In this document: positions 4,184-32,205 of the stretch, piece by piece | How the letters are laid out: the number at the start of each line of letters is the position of its first letter | Numbering within the stretch: the stretch's first letter is position 1 | DNA from: Octopus bimaculoides | Taxonomy: Eukaryota | Length of the DNA stretch: 32,996 nucleotides | Reading direction: 5' to 3' | Assembly (NCBI RefSeq): GCF_001194135.2 | Contig: NC_069002.1 | Span: forward strand, 15,390,981-15,423,976 | Position numbers and translations under genes: made by a program | The notes under the pieces: generated by a model | The model's input: only the letters and a program-made list of their open reading frames with translations | Database searches by the model: none | What the model was told of the DNA's origin: nothing

Positions 4184-4365
4184 CCTGAAATTTGGGAGAG
4201 GGTATAGTCGATTATATCGACCCCCGTACTCAACTGGTACTTATTTTATCCACCCCAAAAGGATAAAAGGTATAGTTGACCTCGGCGGAATTTGAACTCA
4301 GAACATAGCGACGGGCGAAATACCGCTAGGCATTACGTCTAGTGTGCTAAGGATTCTGCCAACTT
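4184..4365 (-). mobile_element. SINE family B
   Basis: gttgacctcggcggaatttgaactcagaac...ggcgaaataccgctaggcatt matches family B. Confidence 0.85.
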
Positions 4366-4449
4366 GTAACCTTAAATAATAATAATAATAACAACAACAA
4401 CAACAATTTCAAACCAACAAATATATGAAAATTTAAGAAAAAGTATAAT

Positions 4450-11211: not shown

Positions 11212-11420
11212 GAGCTGGCAGAAACGTTAGCACGACGGGCGAAATGCTTAGCGGTATTTCGTCTGTCTTTACGTTCTGAGTTCAAATTCCGCTGAGGTCG
11301 ACTTTGCCTTTCATTCTTTCAGGATCGATTAAATAAGTACCAGCTGCGTACTGGAGATCGATCTAATCGACTGGCACCCTCTCCCAAAATTTCGGGCCTT
11401 GTGCCTAAAGTAGAAAAGAT
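11212..11420 (+). mobile_element. tRNA-headed SINE family B, near full length
   Basis: A-box-like gagctggcagaaacg and B-box gagttcaaattcc, body, and A-rich tail. At least 8 related copies in the window. Confidence 0.92.
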
Positions 11421-13515: not shown

Positions 13516-13871
13516 AAAAGGAAATAATATAGCTTTAAAAGTTTTAAACATAATTATAGTGGGGAGTAGGCAAAATTAGTAATTTCTGATTTCTCTTTTT
13601 TCTCTCTCTACTTGTTTGGAATCACGACATTGTAAATATGGCATCACCATTTTATACTGTTGCATCATCTTTAGGCGTAAAATTTGGTCAGCATAGTTGT
13701 TGTTGAAGTTAAGAGACTTTGGAACAGAGCCAGGTGACAGGTACTTTCTTTTCAAGAAATTTTTCCTCAACTTTGACCCGATTGTAGTTGAGGTAGCTAA
13801 TAAAATATCTGGATAGTTGTTGGTGTTTAACAGTCAATATTCTTTTCTCTGTTGGATTCCAAGTTAAAATT

Positions 13872-14061
13872 TGGCACAAGGCCGTCAATTTCGAGGGAGA
13901 GCGTCATTCGATTACATCGAACTCAGTATTCAAGTGATATTTATCTTATCAACCCAAAAAGAATGAAAGGCAAATTCGACCTAGGTGGAATTTGAACGTA
14001 AAGACGGATGAAATGCAGTTAAGCAATTTTGTCCGCCGCGGTAACGGTTCCGCCAGTTCGC
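13872..14061 (-). mobile_element. SINE family B
   Basis: ggcacaaggcc...gaaaggcaaattcgacctaggtggaatttgaac...gccagttcgccg. Confidence 0.85.
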
Positions 14062-14284
14062 CGTTTTGCTGATGTGGAAAAGGTGAGGAAAAAAACGACG
14101 GAGGCGTTAGAAGGTGTCATTTCGCAACAGTTCCTGGACTACTTCGAACAGTGGGAAATGTTCCTGGATCGATTCATTACTTCAAATGGAAAAAAAAACT
14201 TTCAAAGCGATAAGAGTGTAACATAAAAATAAGTGAATAAAATAATATTGCAAAATTCCGGTTTCCTTTGGGTATCCCCTCGTA
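14062..14284 (+). mobile_element. mariner transposon 3' end with right TIR
   Basis: RFADVEKVRKKTTEAL...FEQW..LDRFI.SNG matches the mariner C-terminus. Ends ggtatcccctcg plus TA (TACGAGGG-type terminus). Confidence 0.8.
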
Positions 14285-14312
14285 TTTACAAGTACTCGTA
14301 TATTACAAATAT

Positions 14313-15009
14313 GTGAAAGCGCAATGGCTCAGTGGTTAGGGCAACGGACTCGCAGTCATCTGGACTACTTCCTTGAAAATCATAAAGCAATAAGTGACGA
14401 GCAGGGACACCGAGAACATGAAGACTAGGTATGAAGGCAGGAGGAACACCAGCATGATACTCTCTACTGTTGGTCACTGCAAAGAGACTGTCACGGGGCA
14501 ATTTATTCACATAAAGCAACAAAGAGAATGTTCATTCCTTGAGCAGCTGAAACGCCAGTTTGACAGAAATATCTATTCTAAGATGTGTAATTAAGCATTT
14601 TGTGTAATATATCTGTTAAACAGTGGAGGCGCAATGGCCCAGTGTTTAGGGCAGCGTACTCGCGGTCATAAGATCGCGGTTTCGATTCCCAGACCGGACG
14701 TTGTGAGTGTTTATTGAGCGAAAACACCTAAAGCTCCACGAGGCTCCGGCAGGGGATGGTGGCGAACCCTGTTGTACTCTTTCACCACAAATTTCTCTCA
14801 CTCTTACTTCCTGTTTCTGTTGTGCCTGTAATTCAAAGGGTCAGCCTTGTCACACTGTGTCATGCTGAATATCCCCGAGAACTACGCTAATGGTACACGT
14901 GTCTGTGGAGTGCTCAGCCACTCGCCCGTTAATTTCACGAGTAGGCTGTTCCGTTGATCGGATCAACTGGAACCCTCGACATCGTAAGCGACGGAGTGCC
15001 AAAAAAAAA
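14313..15009 (+). mobile_element. Chimeric SINE-C insertion: SINE head + Chapaev3 fragment + full SINE-C, with 11-bp TSD
   Basis: attacaaatat at 14302-14312 and 15010-15020. 14352 to about 15000 is a near-identical copy of 19194 to about 19842. Confidence 0.85.
14623..15009 (+). mobile_element. tRNA-headed SINE family C, about 390 bp
   Basis: A box tggcccagtg, B box gtttcgattcc. Paralogous to 19465-19852. Poly-A tail. Confidence 0.9.
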
Positions 15010-15111
15010 ATTACAAATATATATGAAAACATATGTATGACTTTCATGTTCTTGACTTGAATAGTGAAACACACACGCACAATGCATGTATGTATGTATG
15101 TATGTATGTAT

Positions 15112-15222: not shown

Positions 15223-18200
15223 GTATGTATGTATGTATGTATGTGTAGTTTTGTATGCTATACGTATGTATTCTCATGCATGTACTTACATATCTAGATA
15301 TGCTCATATATATTTAAATGGTAAATTTATGGAAAGTTTTACAGATTTTTACAGTTCCAGTGATGAATTGGATCTATAGTCTTCGAATTACCTTTCTCCT
15401 TTCTGGCTTTGAGAAGTCTAATTTCTCAAGATTGGTATTTAGGCAGTGCATTACATATCCCAAGTGGAAGAGGGCCAGTCGATTATGTCTCATATTGTTT
15501 AATTTTTCTTTTCTATTGAAAAGCTTAGCTCCCTATCCGGCGGGAAATCTTTCTCTCATCTACTTAACTCAATATGAAAAAAGTGATTATATTCTATTTT
15601 CTTGATTCTCTATGACAATTCTGGAATCTGTTTTAATAAGGCTATACTGACGAGAGGTAAAGAAGCGCGAGAAAGGAGTATAATTATTGGGGATTTTCTC
15701 TGCCCACTCACGGCCATTTGTTATATTTCGTACGACTAAACATATATTTTGTTTGTCACGCAAACATTTGTAAATAGAATGTTAAAATTTCTGCGTGAAT
15801 GATTCGACAAAATATTTTTATACTCGCACTTGTTTGTCCCTGCCTACTCATAAATCGTAAAAAAAAACATTCGTTTCATTTTCAATAAAATTTCTATACA
15901 ACTGCGTTTAGCTGTAGGGTAATTAAAAAAATACGCATGTATATATTTACAAAAACGAAATTCACAGTAATTCGCAAGTGTTCTTATATATAGCTTAGTT
16001 GTGTATGTGCATACTCACAATGTCTTCTGTAGGCGTAGATTATTGTAAAACCTGTTGAATTCGATTGTTCTCTTATCTGTCATGTGTCATGGTAATCCTC
16101 TCTCACCGAAGATATTCATGGGTTCGAAACATAGTACTGCTAACTACGAAAATATTCGCAAATAACATACATACAAACATGTATATAATATGTATTATTT
16201 ATATATAAATATATTTATGAATATATATTGGCCTTCTCGCCTAGTCAGTGGAGTGGCGCCATTCGAAAGCTAAAACAAGGCAAAGTGCACTGTGACCAGC
16301 AATAAGAGCCGATAGTGTGGTCGATGTCGGGATATATTCTTACAAATACACACAGAGATAGATACATACATAGATAAATACATACATACGTACATACATA
16401 CACGCACATATATATTATAATGGAGAAAGCTGCTTGTTAATTAAATATATAACAGTTAATAAAAGAAATCAATTATTAAAGGCTTGACCGCCTGGAAATC
16501 TTTTTTTTATAAATTCATGTTCCAAGATTTTTCCTGTAATTTCGATTTCTGAAGTTTATTGAATATTTGAACTACAAGTTTTTCACAACGTATTTTTCTG
16601 CAATGTATGGATAATTTATCCTGATCACGCTATTTATTAGCATTATCACGCATTTGAGATTTAAAAAAAAAATTATTTCTGTCTATTTCAATACATCTCA
16701 ACGCTTCTAAAACAAACTTTGTTTGTTTACTTTCATCGTAAGTTTAATGTTTAATATTAATTCGTTGAAGGCGAAAATTTCCGATTTTATTTGCAGCAGT
16801 CTCTCAATCTCTCACTGGCTTCTATTTTCATTAATGATAATTTAATATATATTCATTTCAGTTTTCTCATTTCAAGTTATAATTCGGTATTTGCAAAACC
16901 TACAATTTATTCTACTTACGTAATTTTAAAAGATCATTTATTAAATGAATGAATGTTATTGGACGAAATAGCTGTACAACTTTGATATGAGGTACGATTT
17001 CAACAATAATGTTTCCGGAGTTTCTTAAATGAATATTTTTGATAAAATGAAAATCTTTTGATATAACAGTATAATTAAAAACAAATACGTATTGATTTTG
17101 TTGGTATGGCTGTCTGGAACTCTATAAGCCTTACTATAATAACTGTGTGATCGCTGCTATGTCTTGCACGCTAAACGTAGTTGGGTTGCCTTGAAGTTTG
17201 TTTAAATTAGAGATATATTACAACTACGATAAATTACTGAAAGAAATATTTATTAAGCGAGTGAGAATTTTTATAAATAGAAGTTTTCAGTAAAGCTTAC
17301 TTTCTGAACTTCCTTTTATTATTGAATATTTCAAGTCACAAACTTAAATATTAGGTACAAGATAGTTTTTAACGAGCTTTTAACTACGTTCTCTATCACT
17401 CTCTCTCTCTCTCTCTCTCTGTGTTTCTCGCACACACACATGACTTATTTCCTTTTCATCGTTATCTAAGAATTATCAAGTAAATTTGTCGCTATGGCTA
17501 TTTGATATGCTATAGTATTCAAATATCTCTATTAGATCGCTGCTATTTTTTATGCAGGCCACCTTTCGGTTGTTGTCTCAGATATGTGAAGATAAAGAGT
17601 TAATTTCTCTAAACAGTTTTAATTGATTTACTTTTGTTTTAAAGTGAAGACACTTGAACCGAACCCTAATCCATATGGTTGGTAAGTGAGCTTCTTACCA
17701 CACAGTCACGACTGCGCACATATTTGATTATTATTCATGACATAGATACAAGGTGTCAGATCTACCTGGATATTTTTTCGATTCGGAAGAATTAGAGAGA
17801 AAATTGACCTCAGCGAGTTTTGAACTCAGAATGTAATGATTCAGACTAAATGATGTCTTTTAGACATTTTATATTTTATTTTCTGCTCATTCTTAAATTG
17901 CTTGTTTCATACCACATCTATTACACTGGAGAACAGGGTCTTTGTTGCAGGATGCTGGAGACATGTTTCTTACTAATTCTGGTGGGCTGATTTCAAAAAT
18001 GAAATCCATTTTGCTCTATCACGTCAAGATTTTTCACAAACTCAGATGTCCATTTTTCAACATTTCTGGTATTGTCACAATTTTTAATGACAGATTTGAT
18101 TTCATGAAATTCGAACCCATGTATGGAGCTTGACATAACTTTAAAAACTTAGTTTTTCAATATCATTTCAAATAAATACAACTACAAAAGTGAAAAAAAA

Positions 18201-18712: not shown

Positions 18713-19384
18713 ATAGCCAGTTGCGAGAGAAGAGAATGTAAAAACAGCCACGATGTCTTCTGTTTATTTCTAGATCAGGCAGTGAAATAAAATCACAGAT
18801 TTTGTGAAAAAAGCTGACCTTACTTATTTACTTACCTTAGTATGAAACTGGGGGACAAGACAAAGCTTGGGCACCCCATATAGTGTTCAAAACATGTGTT
18901 GAAACACTGAGACAGTGACTGCTTCAAATATTTAAGCAGAAAGTTTCTAGTTTTGTCTTATAAGAAAATAAAGTTGGTATGTTTGATGGGCTGCATATTT
19001 AGTGGCTATTACAAGACGAGCTATTTTTGGAGACCATGTCTGGCATTAAAAAAGAATCACGGGATGATTTTTCTGCAGTTGTATCAGTTTTCCTGAGAAA
19101 CGGGAAACCATTAAATTATGAAGATCTTGTGCGGACCCTGTTTACCAGTTTTGGAGCACTGGACTGTAACATAAATGTAAATGTGCATTTCCTGCAGTCA
19201 TCTGGACTACTTCCTTGAAAATCATAAAGCAATAAGTCACGAGCAGGGACACCGAGAACATGGAGACTAGGTATGAAGGCAGGTGGAACACCAACATGAT
19301 ACTGTCTACTGCTGGTCACTGCAAAGAGACTGTCACGGGGCAATTTATTCACATAAAGCAACAAAGAGAATGTTCATTCCTTGA
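18713..19384 (+). pseudogene. Chapaev3 transposase remnant
   Basis: N-terminal RRECKNSHDVFC and QDKAWAPHIV.KTCVETLRQ. After an internal deletion: KIKVGMFDG, NYEDLV, VHFLQS, LDYF.EN...EQG, METRYEGRW, YCWSLQRD. Confidence 0.85.
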
Positions 19385-19464
19385 GCAGCTGAAACGCCAG
19401 TTTGACAGAAATATCTATTCTAAGATGTGTAATTAAGCATTTTGTGTAATATATCTGTTAAACA

Positions 19465-19852
19465 TTGGAGGCGCAATGGCCCAGTATTTAGGGCAGCGGA
19501 CTCGCGGTCATAGGATCGAGGTTTCGATTTCAAGACCAGGCGTTGTGAGTGTTTATTGAGCAAAAACACCTAAAGCTCCACGAGGCTCCGGCAGGGGATG
19601 GTGGCGAACCCTGTTGTACTCTTTCACCACAACTTTCTCTCACTCTTACTTCCTGTTTCTGTTGTGCCTGTAATTCAAAGGGTCAGCCTTGTCACACTGT
19701 TTCACGCTGAATATCCCCGAGAACTACGTTAAGGGTACACGTGTCTGTGGAGTGCTCAGCCACTCGCACGTTAATTTCACGAGCAGGCTGTTCCGTTGAT
19801 CGGATCAACTGGAACCCTCGACGTCGTAAGCGACGGTGTGCCAACAACAACA
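19465..19852 (+). mobile_element. SINE family C inserted into Chapaev3, with 12-bp TSD
   Basis: atctgttaaaca at 19453-19464 and 19853-19864. (AAC)n tail. Confidence 0.92.
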
Positions 19853-20198
19853 ATCTGTTAAACAATAAAAAGTACTACTTGGTTTGTGTTAGTTTCTTAT
19901 TTCAGTATGGCATTTAATGGCTAAATTAACATTTTTTTGTTAAAAACAATTAATTCCTTTTTAATAAAAACGGTGACGTGATAGAAAATTTCTGAGACCA
20001 TTTCTGAACCCAGCACCATCAAATTAGAAGGTAGGACTAATTGTAAAAAGCAACACAGCTAAAAAGTTTTTCAAAAATGTTCCCCACTGTTACTTTTTAA
20101 GGTCTAAATTTTAGACCTTATTTTAGACTCTAAAAAAATATATTCGGTTATAGGAACATCTGGAGTGAAATATAATGCGAGGCTCAATTATGTCAGTG

Positions 20199-20704
20199 TA
20201 CTCTTTTACTCTTTTACTTGTTTCAGTCTTTTGACTGTAGCCATGCTGGAGCACCGCCTTTAGTCGAGCAAATCAACCCTAAGACTTATTCTTTGGAAGC
20301 CTAGTACTTATTCTATCGGTCTCTTTTGCCGAACTGCTAAGTTNNNNNNNNNNNNNNNNNNNNNNNNNNNNNNNNNNNNNNNNNNNNNNNNNNNNNNNNN
20401 NNNNNNNNNNNNNNNNNNNNNNNNNNNNNNNNNNNNNNNNNNNNNNNNNNNNNNNNNNNNNNNNNNNNNNNNNNNNNNNNNNNNNNNNNNNNNNNNNNNN
20501 NNNNNNNNNNNNNNNNNNNNNNNNNNNNNNNNNNNNNNNNNNNNNNNNNNNNNNNNNNNNNNNNNNNNNNNNNNNNNNNNNNNNNNNNNNNNNNNNNNNN
20601 NNNNNNNNNNNNNNNNNNNNNNNNNNNNNNNNNNNNNNNNNNNNNNNNNNNNNNNNNNNNNNNNNNNTGGGGGGGGGGGCAAACACAGACACACAAACAC
20701 ATAC

Positions 20705-23492: not shown

Positions 23493-24575
23493 ATTACAGA
23501 TCTATCGGACTTTCAAAGAGGTCAAATTGTTGGTGCTCGTATGACAGGTGCTAGCATATCGAAAACAGCCGAAATGTTTGGTGTATCAAGAAGTACAGTC
23601 TCGAAATTAATAACAGCCTTTGAAAAAGAGGGAAAAACCTCCTCGTCGAAACAAAACTCCGGAAGAAAACCAAAACTTTCAGATAGGGATCGTCGAACTC
23701 TTACACGAATTGTTAGAAAGGATCACAAAAGAACAACTCCCAAAATTATTGCAGAGTTAAATGACCTCCTCGAGAACTCAGTTTCCACAAAACTGTTCAC
23801 CGGGAGCTGCACAAAGCCGGATTTCACGGGAGTGCTGCAATCAAAACAACCACTACTTTCAAAAACAAACGTTGCAAAGCGTTTAGAGTGGAGTAAAGAC
23901 CTACAGAATTGGTCCCTAGAGCAGTGGAAGAATGTTATTTTCTCGGATGAGTCATCCTTTACCGTATTTCCGACCACCGGCCAATCACGTGTGGAGACAG
24001 CCAAAACAAGCATTTAACCCAGACTGTCTTCTTCCAACTTTTAAACATGGAGGAGGATCTGTGATGATGTTGGGGGACTATATCTCAGAAATCCGCCGGC
24101 CTAATGGTTTCCCTTCATGGCAGAATTAATAGTCAAAACTATTTAAGCATTTTATCTGATCAAATTCATCCTGTGGTTGCGGAACTGTTTCCGGAGGGAA
24201 ACACAATCTTTCGGAATGATAATGCACCAATTCATACAGTTAAAGTTGTTACTGAATGATATGAGGAACATTCTAGTGAAGTTGAACATCTTATCTGGTT
24301 ACCACAGTCCTCAGATCTCAATATTATCGAACATTTATGGTGCATTTTAGAAAAACAATTAAGGATCCGTTATCTTCCACCATCATCACTACAAGAACTG
24401 GAGACTGTTTTAGCTGAAGAATAGACAAAAATTCCTTTGGAAACAATTCAAACTTTGTACGAGTCCATACCTTGTAGAATTCAAGTGGTAATTACTACCA
24501 AAGGTGGTCCTTCTCCATATTAAAATTAATTTGTTTGAAATTTTAAGGTGTTTCCATTATTTTGTCCAAACCCTG
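23493..24575 (+). mobile_element. Tc1-like transposon: decayed transposase (23493-24523, DD36E spacing) and right TIR
   Basis: DLSDFQRGQIVG paired-like HTH, GRKPKLSDRDRR, VIFSDES, KHGGGSVM, NDNAPIH, SDLNIIEHLW. Ends gtttccattattttgtccaaaccctg plus TA. Frameshifts and stops present; left TIR not recognisable. Confidence 0.92.
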
Positions 24576-26020: not shown

Positions 26021-26482
26021 GATCAAAGGACAGAGTATGGACGTGGTAAAGAAAATTAGAGTAAGTGCTCAGAAACAGAAATTGTAAGTGGACCAAGACT
26101 GTTGTCACCTGACTTCTTTTCATAGGGTAGAGCCCTGACGTTTTTCTTTCTTTATAGTAAGCAAAGACCCTTTCAGATATGCATTGCGTCCGAAACAATG
26201 TGCCGGCTGAGTCCCACCACCACCACCACCACCAGCTATAGGCCTCTTATGTCGAGTGTGGTGGGGTAGGCAAAGAGCTGGAAAAGTTACCACAAAGCGC
26301 TCTATCAAAAACATTACACTCTTTCTTCCCTCTCTGTCTCTGTCTCTGTCTGTCTCTTTCAGACAAACCGACAGACAGAGAGACTGGTGGGGGAGAAAGA
26401 AAGCTAACTTGTTAGATAGAATGTCTTGTAGTATTTATTTTGGTTCTCAGCGCTCTGTGTTCGAATCCGGCTGAGATTATAT

Positions 26483-26700
26483 TTAGGGTGTCAGCATCAT
26501 GATCGTAGGATTGTGGTTTCGATTCCTGGACCGGGCGACGCGTTGTGTTCTTGAGCAAAACACTTCATTTCACGTTACTCCAGTTCACTCAGCTGGCAAA
26601 AATGAGTAACGCTGCGATGGACTGGCGTCTCGTCCAGCTGGGGAACACATACGCCATTGAAATCGGGCCCATGAGTCTGGATAGGCTTTATAAGGGCGCA
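26483..26700 (+). mobile_element. SINE family D, head eroded
   Basis: gtttcgattcctggaccgggcgacgcgttgtgttcttgagcaaaacacttcatttcacg matches 22200-22428. Confidence 0.85.
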
Positions 26701-27789: not shown

Positions 27790-28001
27790 CAAACTTTGGT
27801 ACAAGACCAGCAATTTCAAGGGAGGAGTTAAGACAACTACACTGACCCCACCCCAGTGCTCAACTGACACTTATTTCATCGACCCCGAAAGGATGAAAAG
27901 CAAAGTAGACCATGGCGGAATTTGGACTCAGAATGTAAAGAGGGACGAAATGCAGCTAAGCATTTTTCCAGACGTACTAACGATTCTGCCAGCTCACCGC
28001 C
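27790..28001 (-). mobile_element. SINE family B
   Basis: atcgaccccgaaaggatgaaaagcaaag...ggaatttggactcagaa...ctgccagctcaccgcc. Confidence 0.88.
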
Positions 28002-28814: not shown

Positions 28815-29208
28815 GCAGGAGTGGCTGTATCGTAAGTAGCTTGCTTACCGACCACATGGTTCCGGGTTCAGTCCCACTGCATGGCACCTTGGGCAAGTGT
28901 CTTCTGCTATAGCCTCGGGCCGTGAGTGGATTTGGTAGACGGAAACTGAAAGAAGCCTGTCGTATATATATGTATATATGTATGTGTGTATGTGTTTGTG
29001 TGTCTGTGTTTGTCCCCCCCCCCATCGCTTGACAACCGATGCTGGTGTGTTTACGTCCCCGTAACTTAGTGGTTCGGCAAAAAGAGACCGATAGAATAAG
29101 TACTAGGTTTACAAAGAATAAGTCCTGGGGTCGATTTGCTCGACTAAAGGCGGTGCTCCAGCATGGCCGCAGTCAAATGACTGAAACAAGTAATAGAGTA
29201 AAAGAGTA
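28815..29208 (+). mobile_element. SINE family A, full length, with internal (TA)/(GT) microsatellite
   Basis: tRNA-like head (B box gggttcagtccc), CORE-like ccttgggcaagtgtctt, internal TA/GT repeat, tail gagtaaaagagta. Confidence 0.92.
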
Positions 29209-29659
29209 TATTATTCACCATTTCACTGTAGTTTTCACGTCTATGATCCCCAGGAAACTTTATATCAGTTTCAATGAATGCTCTTTTTTATTTTCAAGTT
29301 CCACCTCAGTTTACTGGGAAATGAGGAGACACAAATGGCACCAAAACTCCAGCTACAGTGAAAATTTTGCTTCTAACTTTAGATCTGTCAGTAAAATTTA
29401 CCTTTTAAATATTGAAAATCACTAATCACAGCCTTCACAAATTTTTTCCCGAGGCCAAAATGAATGTGGAGTGGTGGAAGATATATTTTCAGAGGATAAA
29501 CTTGTATTGGTTGTTACACAATATTTTCAGAAACACATTCTGTTTTAGACATCCTGCCAGTTTGTTTTTGTATCTTTTCTCATCGACTATTCTATTAGCA
29601 TAGAAAAAGCACATATACTTTGTGGGATGAAACTTAAACAAGAGTCAGTGATATAAATT

Positions 29660-30600
29660 TAAGTTTACGTATTTAGGTAGTAAGATAACATTCTCAGGCG
29701 ACACCGACGAAGATATTAAGATGAGAATAAGTAAGGCAAGGACTGCTTTCCACCAGTTAAAAAAAGTATGGAGCGCAAGTGTAATTTCAATAAAGAACAA
29801 AATAAGAATTTTTAACACTAACGTAAAAGCGGTGTTATTGTATGGGGCTGAGACATGGAGAACAACAGTTAAGTCAAATAAGCAAATACAATCATTCATC
29901 AACAGGTGCTTGCGTAGTATACTTAAAATCAGATGGCCCGAACACATAAGCAATATGGAGCTATGGCAAAGAACGAATCAAGTTTCGAGTAGGGAGCAAA
30001 TATTTAAGAAAAAGTGGAAGTGGCTTGGTAGCACAATTAGAAAGGACACACCAAATGCAGCGAAAAGTGCTTTACAGTGGAATCCGGATNNNNNNNNNNT
30101 GGAGCGCAAGTGTAATTTCAATAAAGAACAAAATAAGAATTTTTAACACTAACGTAAAAGCGGTGTTATTGTATGGGGCTGAGACATGGAGAACAACAGT
30201 TAAGTCAAATAAGCAAATACAATCATTCATCAACAGGTGCTTGCGTAGTATACTTAAAATCAGATGGCCCGAACACATAAGCAATATGGAGCTATGGCAA
30301 AGAACGAATCAAGTTTCGAGTAGGGAGCAAATATTTAAGAAAAAGTGGAAGTGGCTTGGTAGCACAATTAGAAAGGACACACCAAATGCAGCGAAAAGTG
30401 CTTTACAGTGGAATCCGGATGGATATAGAAAGACGGGTAAGCCTAAGAACTCGTGACGTAGATCAACACAAAAGGAACTAGGGAAAGGGGGACATTCATG
30501 GTAGAGTATAAGTACAAAAGCGAGAAATTATGCGACATGGAATTCAATTATAAGTGGCCTATACTCCGCGTTGGAGGGTTAAAGGCAAGAAAGAAAAAAA
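29660..30600 (+). pseudogene. RTE-clade LINE 3' end, with an artefactual 321-bp duplication
   Basis: FTYLGS, RISKARTAF..L..VW, VKAVLLYGAETW, FINRCLRSILKIRWP, KWKWLG, ALQWNPDG.RK.G.PK. (AAGA)-rich tail. Confidence 0.92.
30090..30099. other. 10-N gap between two identical 321-bp segments
   Basis: 29769-30089 equals 30100-30420 as far as can be read. Confidence 0.95.
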
Positions 30601-31814: not shown

Positions 31815-32205
31815 GCAGGAGTGGCTGTGTGGTAAGTAGCTTGCTTGCCAACGACATAGTTCCGGGTTCAGTCCCACTGCGTGGCATCTTGGGCAAGTGT
31901 CTTCTACTATAGCCTCGGGCCGACCAAAGCCTTGTGAGTGGATTTGGTACACGGAAACTGAAAGAAGCCCGTCGTATATATGTATATATATGTGTGTGTG
32001 TGTGTATGTGTGTCTGTCTTTGTCCCCCTAGCATTGCTTGACAACCGATGCTGGTGTGTTTATGTCCCCGTAACTTAGCGGTTCGGCAAAAGAGACTGAT
32101 AGAATAAGTACTAGGCTTCCAAAGAATAAGTCCCGGGGTCGAATTGTTCGACTAAAGGCGGTGCTCCAGCATGGCCGCAGTCAAATGATTGAAACGAGTA
32201 AAGAG
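31815..32205 (+). mobile_element. SINE family A, full length
   Basis: Same architecture as 28815-29208. Confidence 0.92.

Follow-up and report, generated by a model that had tools for sequence, protein, structure and literature searches.

At positions 14302–15020 of the 32,996-nt stretch of DNA that we analyzed (the window), a chimeric unit lies on the forward strand between two exact copies of an 11-bp target-site duplication, ATTACAAATAT, the left one at 14302–14312 and the right one at 15010–15020. The unit between the duplications is 697 bp long. It opens with an outer SINE head (14313–14359), which comprises SINE positions 1–47 as determined by a box scan and by alignment to two related heads, and which ends in a junction microhomology, GCAGTCAT (14352–14359). 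The head is followed by a piece of a decayed DNA transposon (14360–14610), a copy of 19202–19452, which contains a remnant of the C-terminal coding region of a transposase and a 3′ untranslated part, as delimited by gapless alignment, tblastn and comparison of its translations with those of relatives. A TTTT Pol III termination signal (14598–14601) is located near the end of this piece, between the outer head and the inner SINE. There follow a 12-bp copy of the donor SINE’s left duplication, ATCTGTTAAACA (14611–14622), a full-length inner SINE (14623–15000) and an A9 tail (15001–15009), all in the same orientation. The 11-bp repeat does not occur a third time in the window, and its two copies directly flank the unit, abutting SINE position 1 on the left and the A9 tail on the right. 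Given the base composition, the probability that 11 nt would match by chance at two fixed boundaries is about 5e-7. The preliminary description had proposed this bracketing duplication and the succession of SINE head, transposon 3′ end and full SINE, and the exact repeat, the aligned 47-nt head and the gapless copy described below bear out both. We also considered that a truncated second transposon copy might abut a SINE head by chance, and rejected this candidate, since it would make the flanking 11-bp repeat a coincidence of that same size.

The source of most of the unit lies 4,842 bp (~4.8 kb) away on the same gap-free stretch. A decayed and frameshifted transposase-like element (18934–19452, forward strand), detected by tblastn, contains GCAGTCAT at 19194–19201, where alignment and a pattern search place the start of the copied tract. 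The element is followed by the donor SINE (19465–19852), which ends in a CAACAACAACA tail and is enclosed by an exact 12-bp repeat, ATCTGTTAAACA, with its left copy at 19453–19464 and its right copy at 19853–19864. Positions 14352–15002 align with 19194–19844 over 651 bp without a gap, with 25 mismatches (96.2% identity). Of these, the 271 bp of transposon contain six and the 380 bp of SINE the other 19. The anatomy of the unit and its relationship to the donor are directly observed, and here the preliminary description was accurate: it had the insert copying the region from 19194 onward, counted the same six substitutions, and noted that only the donor’s left duplication is kept, its right copy being absent from the chimera. 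It was equally right that the tails differ, A9 (15001–15009) in the chimera vs (AAC)n in the donor. An AATAAA at 19864–19869 overlaps the last base of the donor’s right duplication and is missing from the chimera; it was probably the poly(A) signal of the transposon’s 3′ end, with the SINE having landed just upstream. Because the chimera has A9 rather than (AAC)n, and lacks both the donor’s right duplication and the AATAAA, its 3′ end does not derive from donor DNA past the SINE. A candidate polyadenylated Pol II retrocopy was rejected on similar grounds, as there is no AATAAA near the chimera’s tail and the donor’s own signal, past the right duplication, is not in the chimera.

The direction of copying follows from the context at each locus. 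At the donor, the transposase remnant continues unbroken upstream of the copied part, to at least 18934, and the SINE sits between two exact duplications; the donor is therefore the original context and the chimera its derivative. Upstream of the chimera, tblastn found no transposase-like sequence, and so the transposon fragment is not native there. We sought a paralogous empty site for the chimera, and found its insertion site to lie outside every repeat that is represented elsewhere in the window. Some 240 bp to the left of that site lies one copy of another short repeat family, which contains GGAATTTGAACTCAGAA and whose five copies are 68–78% alike (805–961, 4194–4367, 11212–11408, 13866–14063 and 27791–27999).

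The outer, inner and donor heads begin at the identical nucleotide, each directly after a duplication. The outer head is 85% identical to the start of the inner SINE (14623–14669) over 47 nt, and 88% identical to the donor SINE over 41 nt. In the window, the SINE is represented by two full copies and one head, and the chimera has no second copy. A G-to-T change in the head had been put forward as common to both inner-type SINEs, and it is present: they carry T (gtgTttaggg and gtaTttaggg) where the outer head carries G (gtgGttaggg). The change is not private to these two copies, however, because the T variant also occurs in a different tRNA-headed SINE at about 26455–26580. That SINE has in common with the studied one the T-arm/B-box region GGTTTCGATTCC as well as the ...TTTAGGG variant.

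The transposon piece encodes, with frameshifts and stops, ...HFLQS-HLDYFLENHKAIS(D/H)EQG...ME(T)RYEGRWN.... A full HMMER pass over a library of 1.8 billion representative proteins recovered 22 relatives. The nearest are short frames from assembly contigs, one of which has the same frameshifted end, and longer ones come from an arachnid genome; the match is to the C-terminal region, ...HFLHSHLDFFP.N.G..S.E.GERFHQ...RYQG.W, of unnamed proteins. By these alignments, the fragment is the C-terminal part of a transposase-like protein family that is widespread in animals. Pfam has no family over the fragment or its relatives, and a protein search with a read-through of the transposase remnant gave no match. 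The name Chapaev3 for the fragment is a putative label given in the preliminary description, and SINE-C is that description’s own label. A candidate terminal inverted pair (18015–18034 and 19966–19985) matches over 20 nt at 85%, with ends that are not sharp. Elsewhere in the window, a second fragment of the same transposase-like family lies on the minus strand at 29394–29579 (tblastn with an arachnid relative, 41.5% over 65 residues), and a 158-residue frame at 23541–24017 with the Tc1/Tc3-type DNA-binding domains PF01498 and PF13384 represents a truncated Tc1-like element.

The SINE has the characteristics of a tRNA-derived family: internal A and B boxes, exact 11-bp or 12-bp duplications, and A-rich or simple-repeat tails. 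The inner SINE has an A box at 14635–14645 and a B-box-like site at 14679–14689, each with one mismatch and with a tRNA-like spacing, and the donor SINE has both boxes with two mismatches each. Neither ARAGORN nor Rfam called a tRNA in the SINE head, and the head is consequently no more than tRNA-like. Further searches with the SINE and its surroundings returned little. DNA scans of metagenome, viral and prokaryote collections with two SINE-core patterns yielded nothing real; an exact 22-nt match in a Rhizobium oryzicola contig (5712–5733) was rejected as chance, with no extension past 22 nt and about 0.07 such matches expected by our own estimate. A read-through of the SINE frame found no match in a protein collection, none of 20 reading frames from the window, including those that flank the chimera, was present there by exact look-up, and a full-text literature search for words of the SINE sequence found nothing relevant.

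The promoter boxes determine whether the unit could be mobilized as a whole. Type-2 Pol III promoters combine an A box and a B box, and their transcripts terminate at T-runs. The box scan gave the outer head a perfect A box (14325–14335) and no B box. A single B-box-like site exists in the entire unit, that of the inner SINE; it is 344 bp from the outer A box, and the TTTT at 14598–14601 lies between them. Therefore, the outer head is unable to drive a transcript to the SINE’s tail. It had been suggested that a Pol III promoter now lies upstream of transposon DNA within a retroposable unit. This suggestion is not supported: as a whole, the unit is no retroposable element driven by Pol III. What the outer head retains is an orphan A box, and we see no function for the chimera. 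The inner SINE retains its promoter boxes and, from their sequence, can presumably still act as an ordinary SINE.

Before interpreting the chimera as a biological product, one may ask whether a short-read assembler or gap closer created its junction, or the entire insert, in a repeat-rich draft scaffold. The scaffold does contain N gaps and one obvious artefact, in which a 10-N gap has identical 300-nt copies on its two sides (29769–30399), and the longest identical run between donor and chimera, 152 bp between the mismatches at 14470 and 14623, could confuse short reads. Yet the two copies differ at 25 positions, and so they were not built from the same reads used twice. The junction of head and transposon shares only 8 bp, which is far below an assembler’s overlap or k-mer length, and it must consequently exist in the reads. 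The unit also has a perfect duplication and a tail, and positions 1–20343 contain no N run; the window’s only N runs are at 20344–20667 and 30090–30099, which places both loci on one gap-free stretch. We consider an assembly artefact very improbable. The copies around the 10-N gap (29769–30068 and 30100–30399) are 100% identical and in direct orientation, lie within a LINE ORF2 C-terminal fragment (Pfam DUF6451), and look like an unmerged overlap from scaffolding or gap closing. The 324-N gap, some 480 bp rightward of the donor SINE, falls inside a further repeat family, with copies at 2131–2323, 20199–20343, 29015–29208 and 32020–32202.

We now turn to how the chimera arose. The preliminary description had proposed two mechanisms, a microhomology-mediated templated repair of a broken SINE and a template switch during reverse transcription, and these are the right candidates; the evidence ranks them, with DNA-level repair or template switching favoured, and does not decide between them. 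Our preferred reading, which we hold to be somewhat probable, is an in-place microhomology-mediated template switch or an aborted strand-annealing repair of a resident SINE that used the paralogue 4.8 kb away as its template. This assessment includes the use of the neighbouring locus’s nascent RNA in cis as the repair template, which has the same product. We infer both the break and the order of events from the anatomy, as follows. An ordinary full-length SINE would first have inserted at 14313 by target-primed reverse transcription, which left the 11-bp duplication and the A9 tail. Near its position 47, this resident SINE would then have suffered a break or stalled a fork, and the template would have been the paralogous SINE 4.8 kb downstream, seated in the 3′ end of the decayed DNA transposon.

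Two routes lead from this break to an identical product. In the first, the nascent ...GC(A/G)GTCAT end would pair, out of register, with GCAGTCAT at 19194 and not with the homologous GCGGTCAT, which lies 310 bp further downstream at 19504; copying would then take in the transposon tail, the donor’s left duplication and the donor SINE, in part or entirely, and synthesis would return through SINE homology. In the second, the right-hand broken end would invade the donor SINE, and leftward synthesis would pass its 5′ end into the transposon, whereupon the displaced strand would be joined to the left end at the same microhomology. Either route would yield a templated insertion of about 310 bp (14360–14669) together with a conversion tract in the SINE’s body.

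The junctions have the form that such a repair would leave. GCAGTCAT is found at 14352 and 19194, and GCGGTCAT at 14662 and 19504; the junction consequently matches the transposon (19194–19201) at eight of eight positions and SINE positions 40–47 at seven of eight, as had been claimed. A 3′ end reading ...GC(A/G)GTCAT pairs 8/8 with 19194 and only 7/8 with the homologous 19504, so that the microhomology is 8/8 to the template and 7/8 or 8/8 to the recipient. In the 14–20 kb stretch that we searched, 19194 is the sole GC[AG]GTCAT upstream of the donor SINE. This junction thus consists of a microhomology of 8 bp, the second one is concealed within SINE homology, and the insert (14360–14669) is bounded by these alone, with neither a duplication nor a tail of its own.

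The distance between the two loci is the strongest discriminator between the DNA and RNA models. Presuming that retroposition has no local bias, a random retrocopy would land within 4842 bp of its source with a probability of 2 × 4842/G, or 4e-6 to 2e-5 for a genome size G of 0.5–2.7 Gb. Ectopic repair, in contrast, reportedly favours nearby templates in cis, a finding attributed to Engels and colleagues (Science 263:1623, 1994). Repair synthesis in yeast jumps between templates at microhomologies of about 7.5 bp, extends for a few hundred bases on the new template and comes back by way of extended homeology (PMC12891019). Recombination and template switching by reverse transcriptase are both accepted routes for the exchange of SINE modules (PMC4758252).

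The alternative is a one-step retroposition with a template switch by reverse transcriptase. Within a Pol II read-through RNA, the A-rich tail of the donor SINE would have served as the priming site of a LINE enzyme, which would then have copied the SINE together with its left duplication and 271 nt of transposon RNA. At GCAGTCAT, it would have jumped to positions 40–47 of a separate SINE RNA and run to that RNA’s 5′ end, after which the entire cDNA would have integrated at 14302–14312. The product would be a 5′ transduction that is capped by a second SINE head. This model accounts directly for the enclosure of the entire unit by one exact duplication and an A tail, although a modified resident SINE would show the same, and for an outer head that begins at SINE position 1, as expected from a run to the RNA’s 5′ end. 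The mechanism also has precedent, as template switching by reverse transcriptase is a textbook route for SINE module exchange (PMC4758252) and LINE-mediated chimeras with a single duplication are well documented, including 113 human Alu/L1 examples (10.1101/2025.02.02.635956).

Several features nevertheless weigh against it. Under random insertion, a source only 4.8 kb away has a probability of about 1e-5. The 5′ partner of known chimeras is usually a full-length small RNA that is joined at its 3′ end (10.1101/2025.02.02.635956), whereas here it is a 47-nt piece of about 388 nt with an internal join. A Pol III template is excluded by the TTTT at 19440 and by the SINE promoter, which is internal and downstream of the transposon part; a Pol II read-through transcript is consequently required, and no poly(A) signal accounts for an RNA end at the SINE’s tail. 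Finally, the chimera’s A9 tail is at odds with the donor’s (AAC)n. We regard the retroposition model as possible and rather unlikely.

How the mismatches between chimera and donor are distributed bears on both models. The 25 differences, a small number on which to base statistics, fall into successive tracts of 0/44, 6/75, 0/152, 10/98, 1/138 and 8/144 (permutation p = 0.02–0.05). They form clusters at 14396–14470, 14623–14720 and 14859–14995, and the intervening 152 and 138 bp hold zero and one; all six mismatches of the transposon part are confined to the first cluster. CpG sites account for five of the 25. In the transposon part, comparison with relatives assigns at least three changes within 42 bp (14421, 14442 and 14462) to the chimera’s lineage. 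When the cluster in the head is polarized with the SINE at about 26455–26580 as the outgroup, approximately six changes fall on the donor’s lineage and three on the chimera’s. We tried to locate a switch point within the SINE from the density of mismatches and dropped the attempt, as clusters also occur within the part that was necessarily copied. The patchiness is real enough to be recorded, yet it is not a marker of resident sequence or of a switch point. A mosaic of copied, resident and converted tracts predicts patchy mismatches more readily than a single uniform copy does.

One comparison counts against the DNA model. The SINE’s body differs from the donor at 16 of 333 positions (4.8%), while the outer head differs from the donor’s inferred ancestor at 6 of 47 (12.8%; Fisher p = 0.04). 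The body is the more donor-like of the two, and its resemblance extends along its whole length. A conversion tract would then have to cover the greater part of it, unless the SINE arrived entire with the insert; the RNA model predicts the latter, and under it the copying of the body needs nothing extra.

A different kind of explanation holds that the head, transposon piece and SINE together form an amplified composite family whose master lies elsewhere, and that the neighbouring locus is merely a paralogue of the true source. The chimera-lineage changes in the transposon part could then be family-specific variants. However, with no outer B box and a TTTT ahead of the inner SINE, the whole unit cannot be transcribed by Pol III, and no second copy is present in 33 kb. 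An antisense frame that spans the junction shares three 5-residue words with no protein, which is a weak argument, as the collection holds no frames from this genome. The nearness of a donor with the exact context would moreover be a coincidence. We give this explanation very little credence. We think it similarly far-fetched that a template switch of the reverse transcriptase fused a SINE head, a DNA-transposon fragment and a second SINE into a new composite retroposon, of which the unit would be the founder or one of a few members. If this were the case, the locus would record the birth of a modular ‘jigsaw’ SINE beside its visible source, one that could spread by way of read-through transcripts. 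Most likely, the chimera is a one-off product of known processes and no new mobile unit was created.

Composite SINEs are common, and the exchange of their modules is attributed to recombination or to template switching during reverse transcription. The intermediates of this exchange seldom come to light, since product and source are, as a rule, old and widely separated. At this locus, the two share a single 5-kb stretch at about 4% divergence, and every junction can be read. The rearrangement is a single and probably neutral one, and its value is that of a clean worked example, not of a discovery.

The chimera resembles several known systems, and differs from each. As in the 5′ transductions of L1 and SVA, the source element’s upstream flank, including its left duplication, has been carried 5′ of the copy. 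However, classical 5′ transductions begin at an upstream promoter and have no second element’s head as a cap, whereas the SINE’s Pol III promoter is internal and the carried flank contains TTTT. Partial gene conversion is said to have been described for young Alu elements by Kass and colleagues in 1995 and by Roy and colleagues in 2000. The likeness is that one SINE copy is partly overwritten by a paralogue, with patchy differences as a result; ordinary conversions, though, occur in register and without flank, while here a slip of 310 bp inserted the flank and a second head. Chimeric retrocopies that LINEs produce by switching of the reverse transcriptase or by RNA ligation (U6/L1, Alu/L1 and tripartite forms) likewise join two RNA-derived parts in the same orientation, with one duplication and an A tail. 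Their 5′ partners are mostly full-length (Alu), whereas here only SINE positions 1–47 are present and the join is at an internal microhomology, and their sources are unlinked, unlike one that is 4.8 kb from the insertion (10.1101/2025.02.02.635956).

Templated sequence insertion polymorphisms of classes 1 and 2 similarly contain a stretch that is templated from elsewhere, and those of class 2 have microhomology without a duplication, as does the inner insert (PMC5110952). Their templates, in contrast, are distant and RNA-derived, and class 1 needs a poly(A) signal 10–30 nt before the tail, of which the chimera has none (PMC5110952). SDSA with a template switch, the interchromosomal switches of yeast and FoSTeS/MMBIR differ in that, at this locus, the recipient and the return homology are two SINE copies, so that the product resembles a retroposon with a transduction, and in that the event is read back from one fixed sequence. 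In their main features, these processes are nevertheless alike: a nearby paralogous template is entered at a microhomology of about 8 bp, copied over a few hundred bases and left through extended homology, and the insert has no duplication of its own (PMC12891019).
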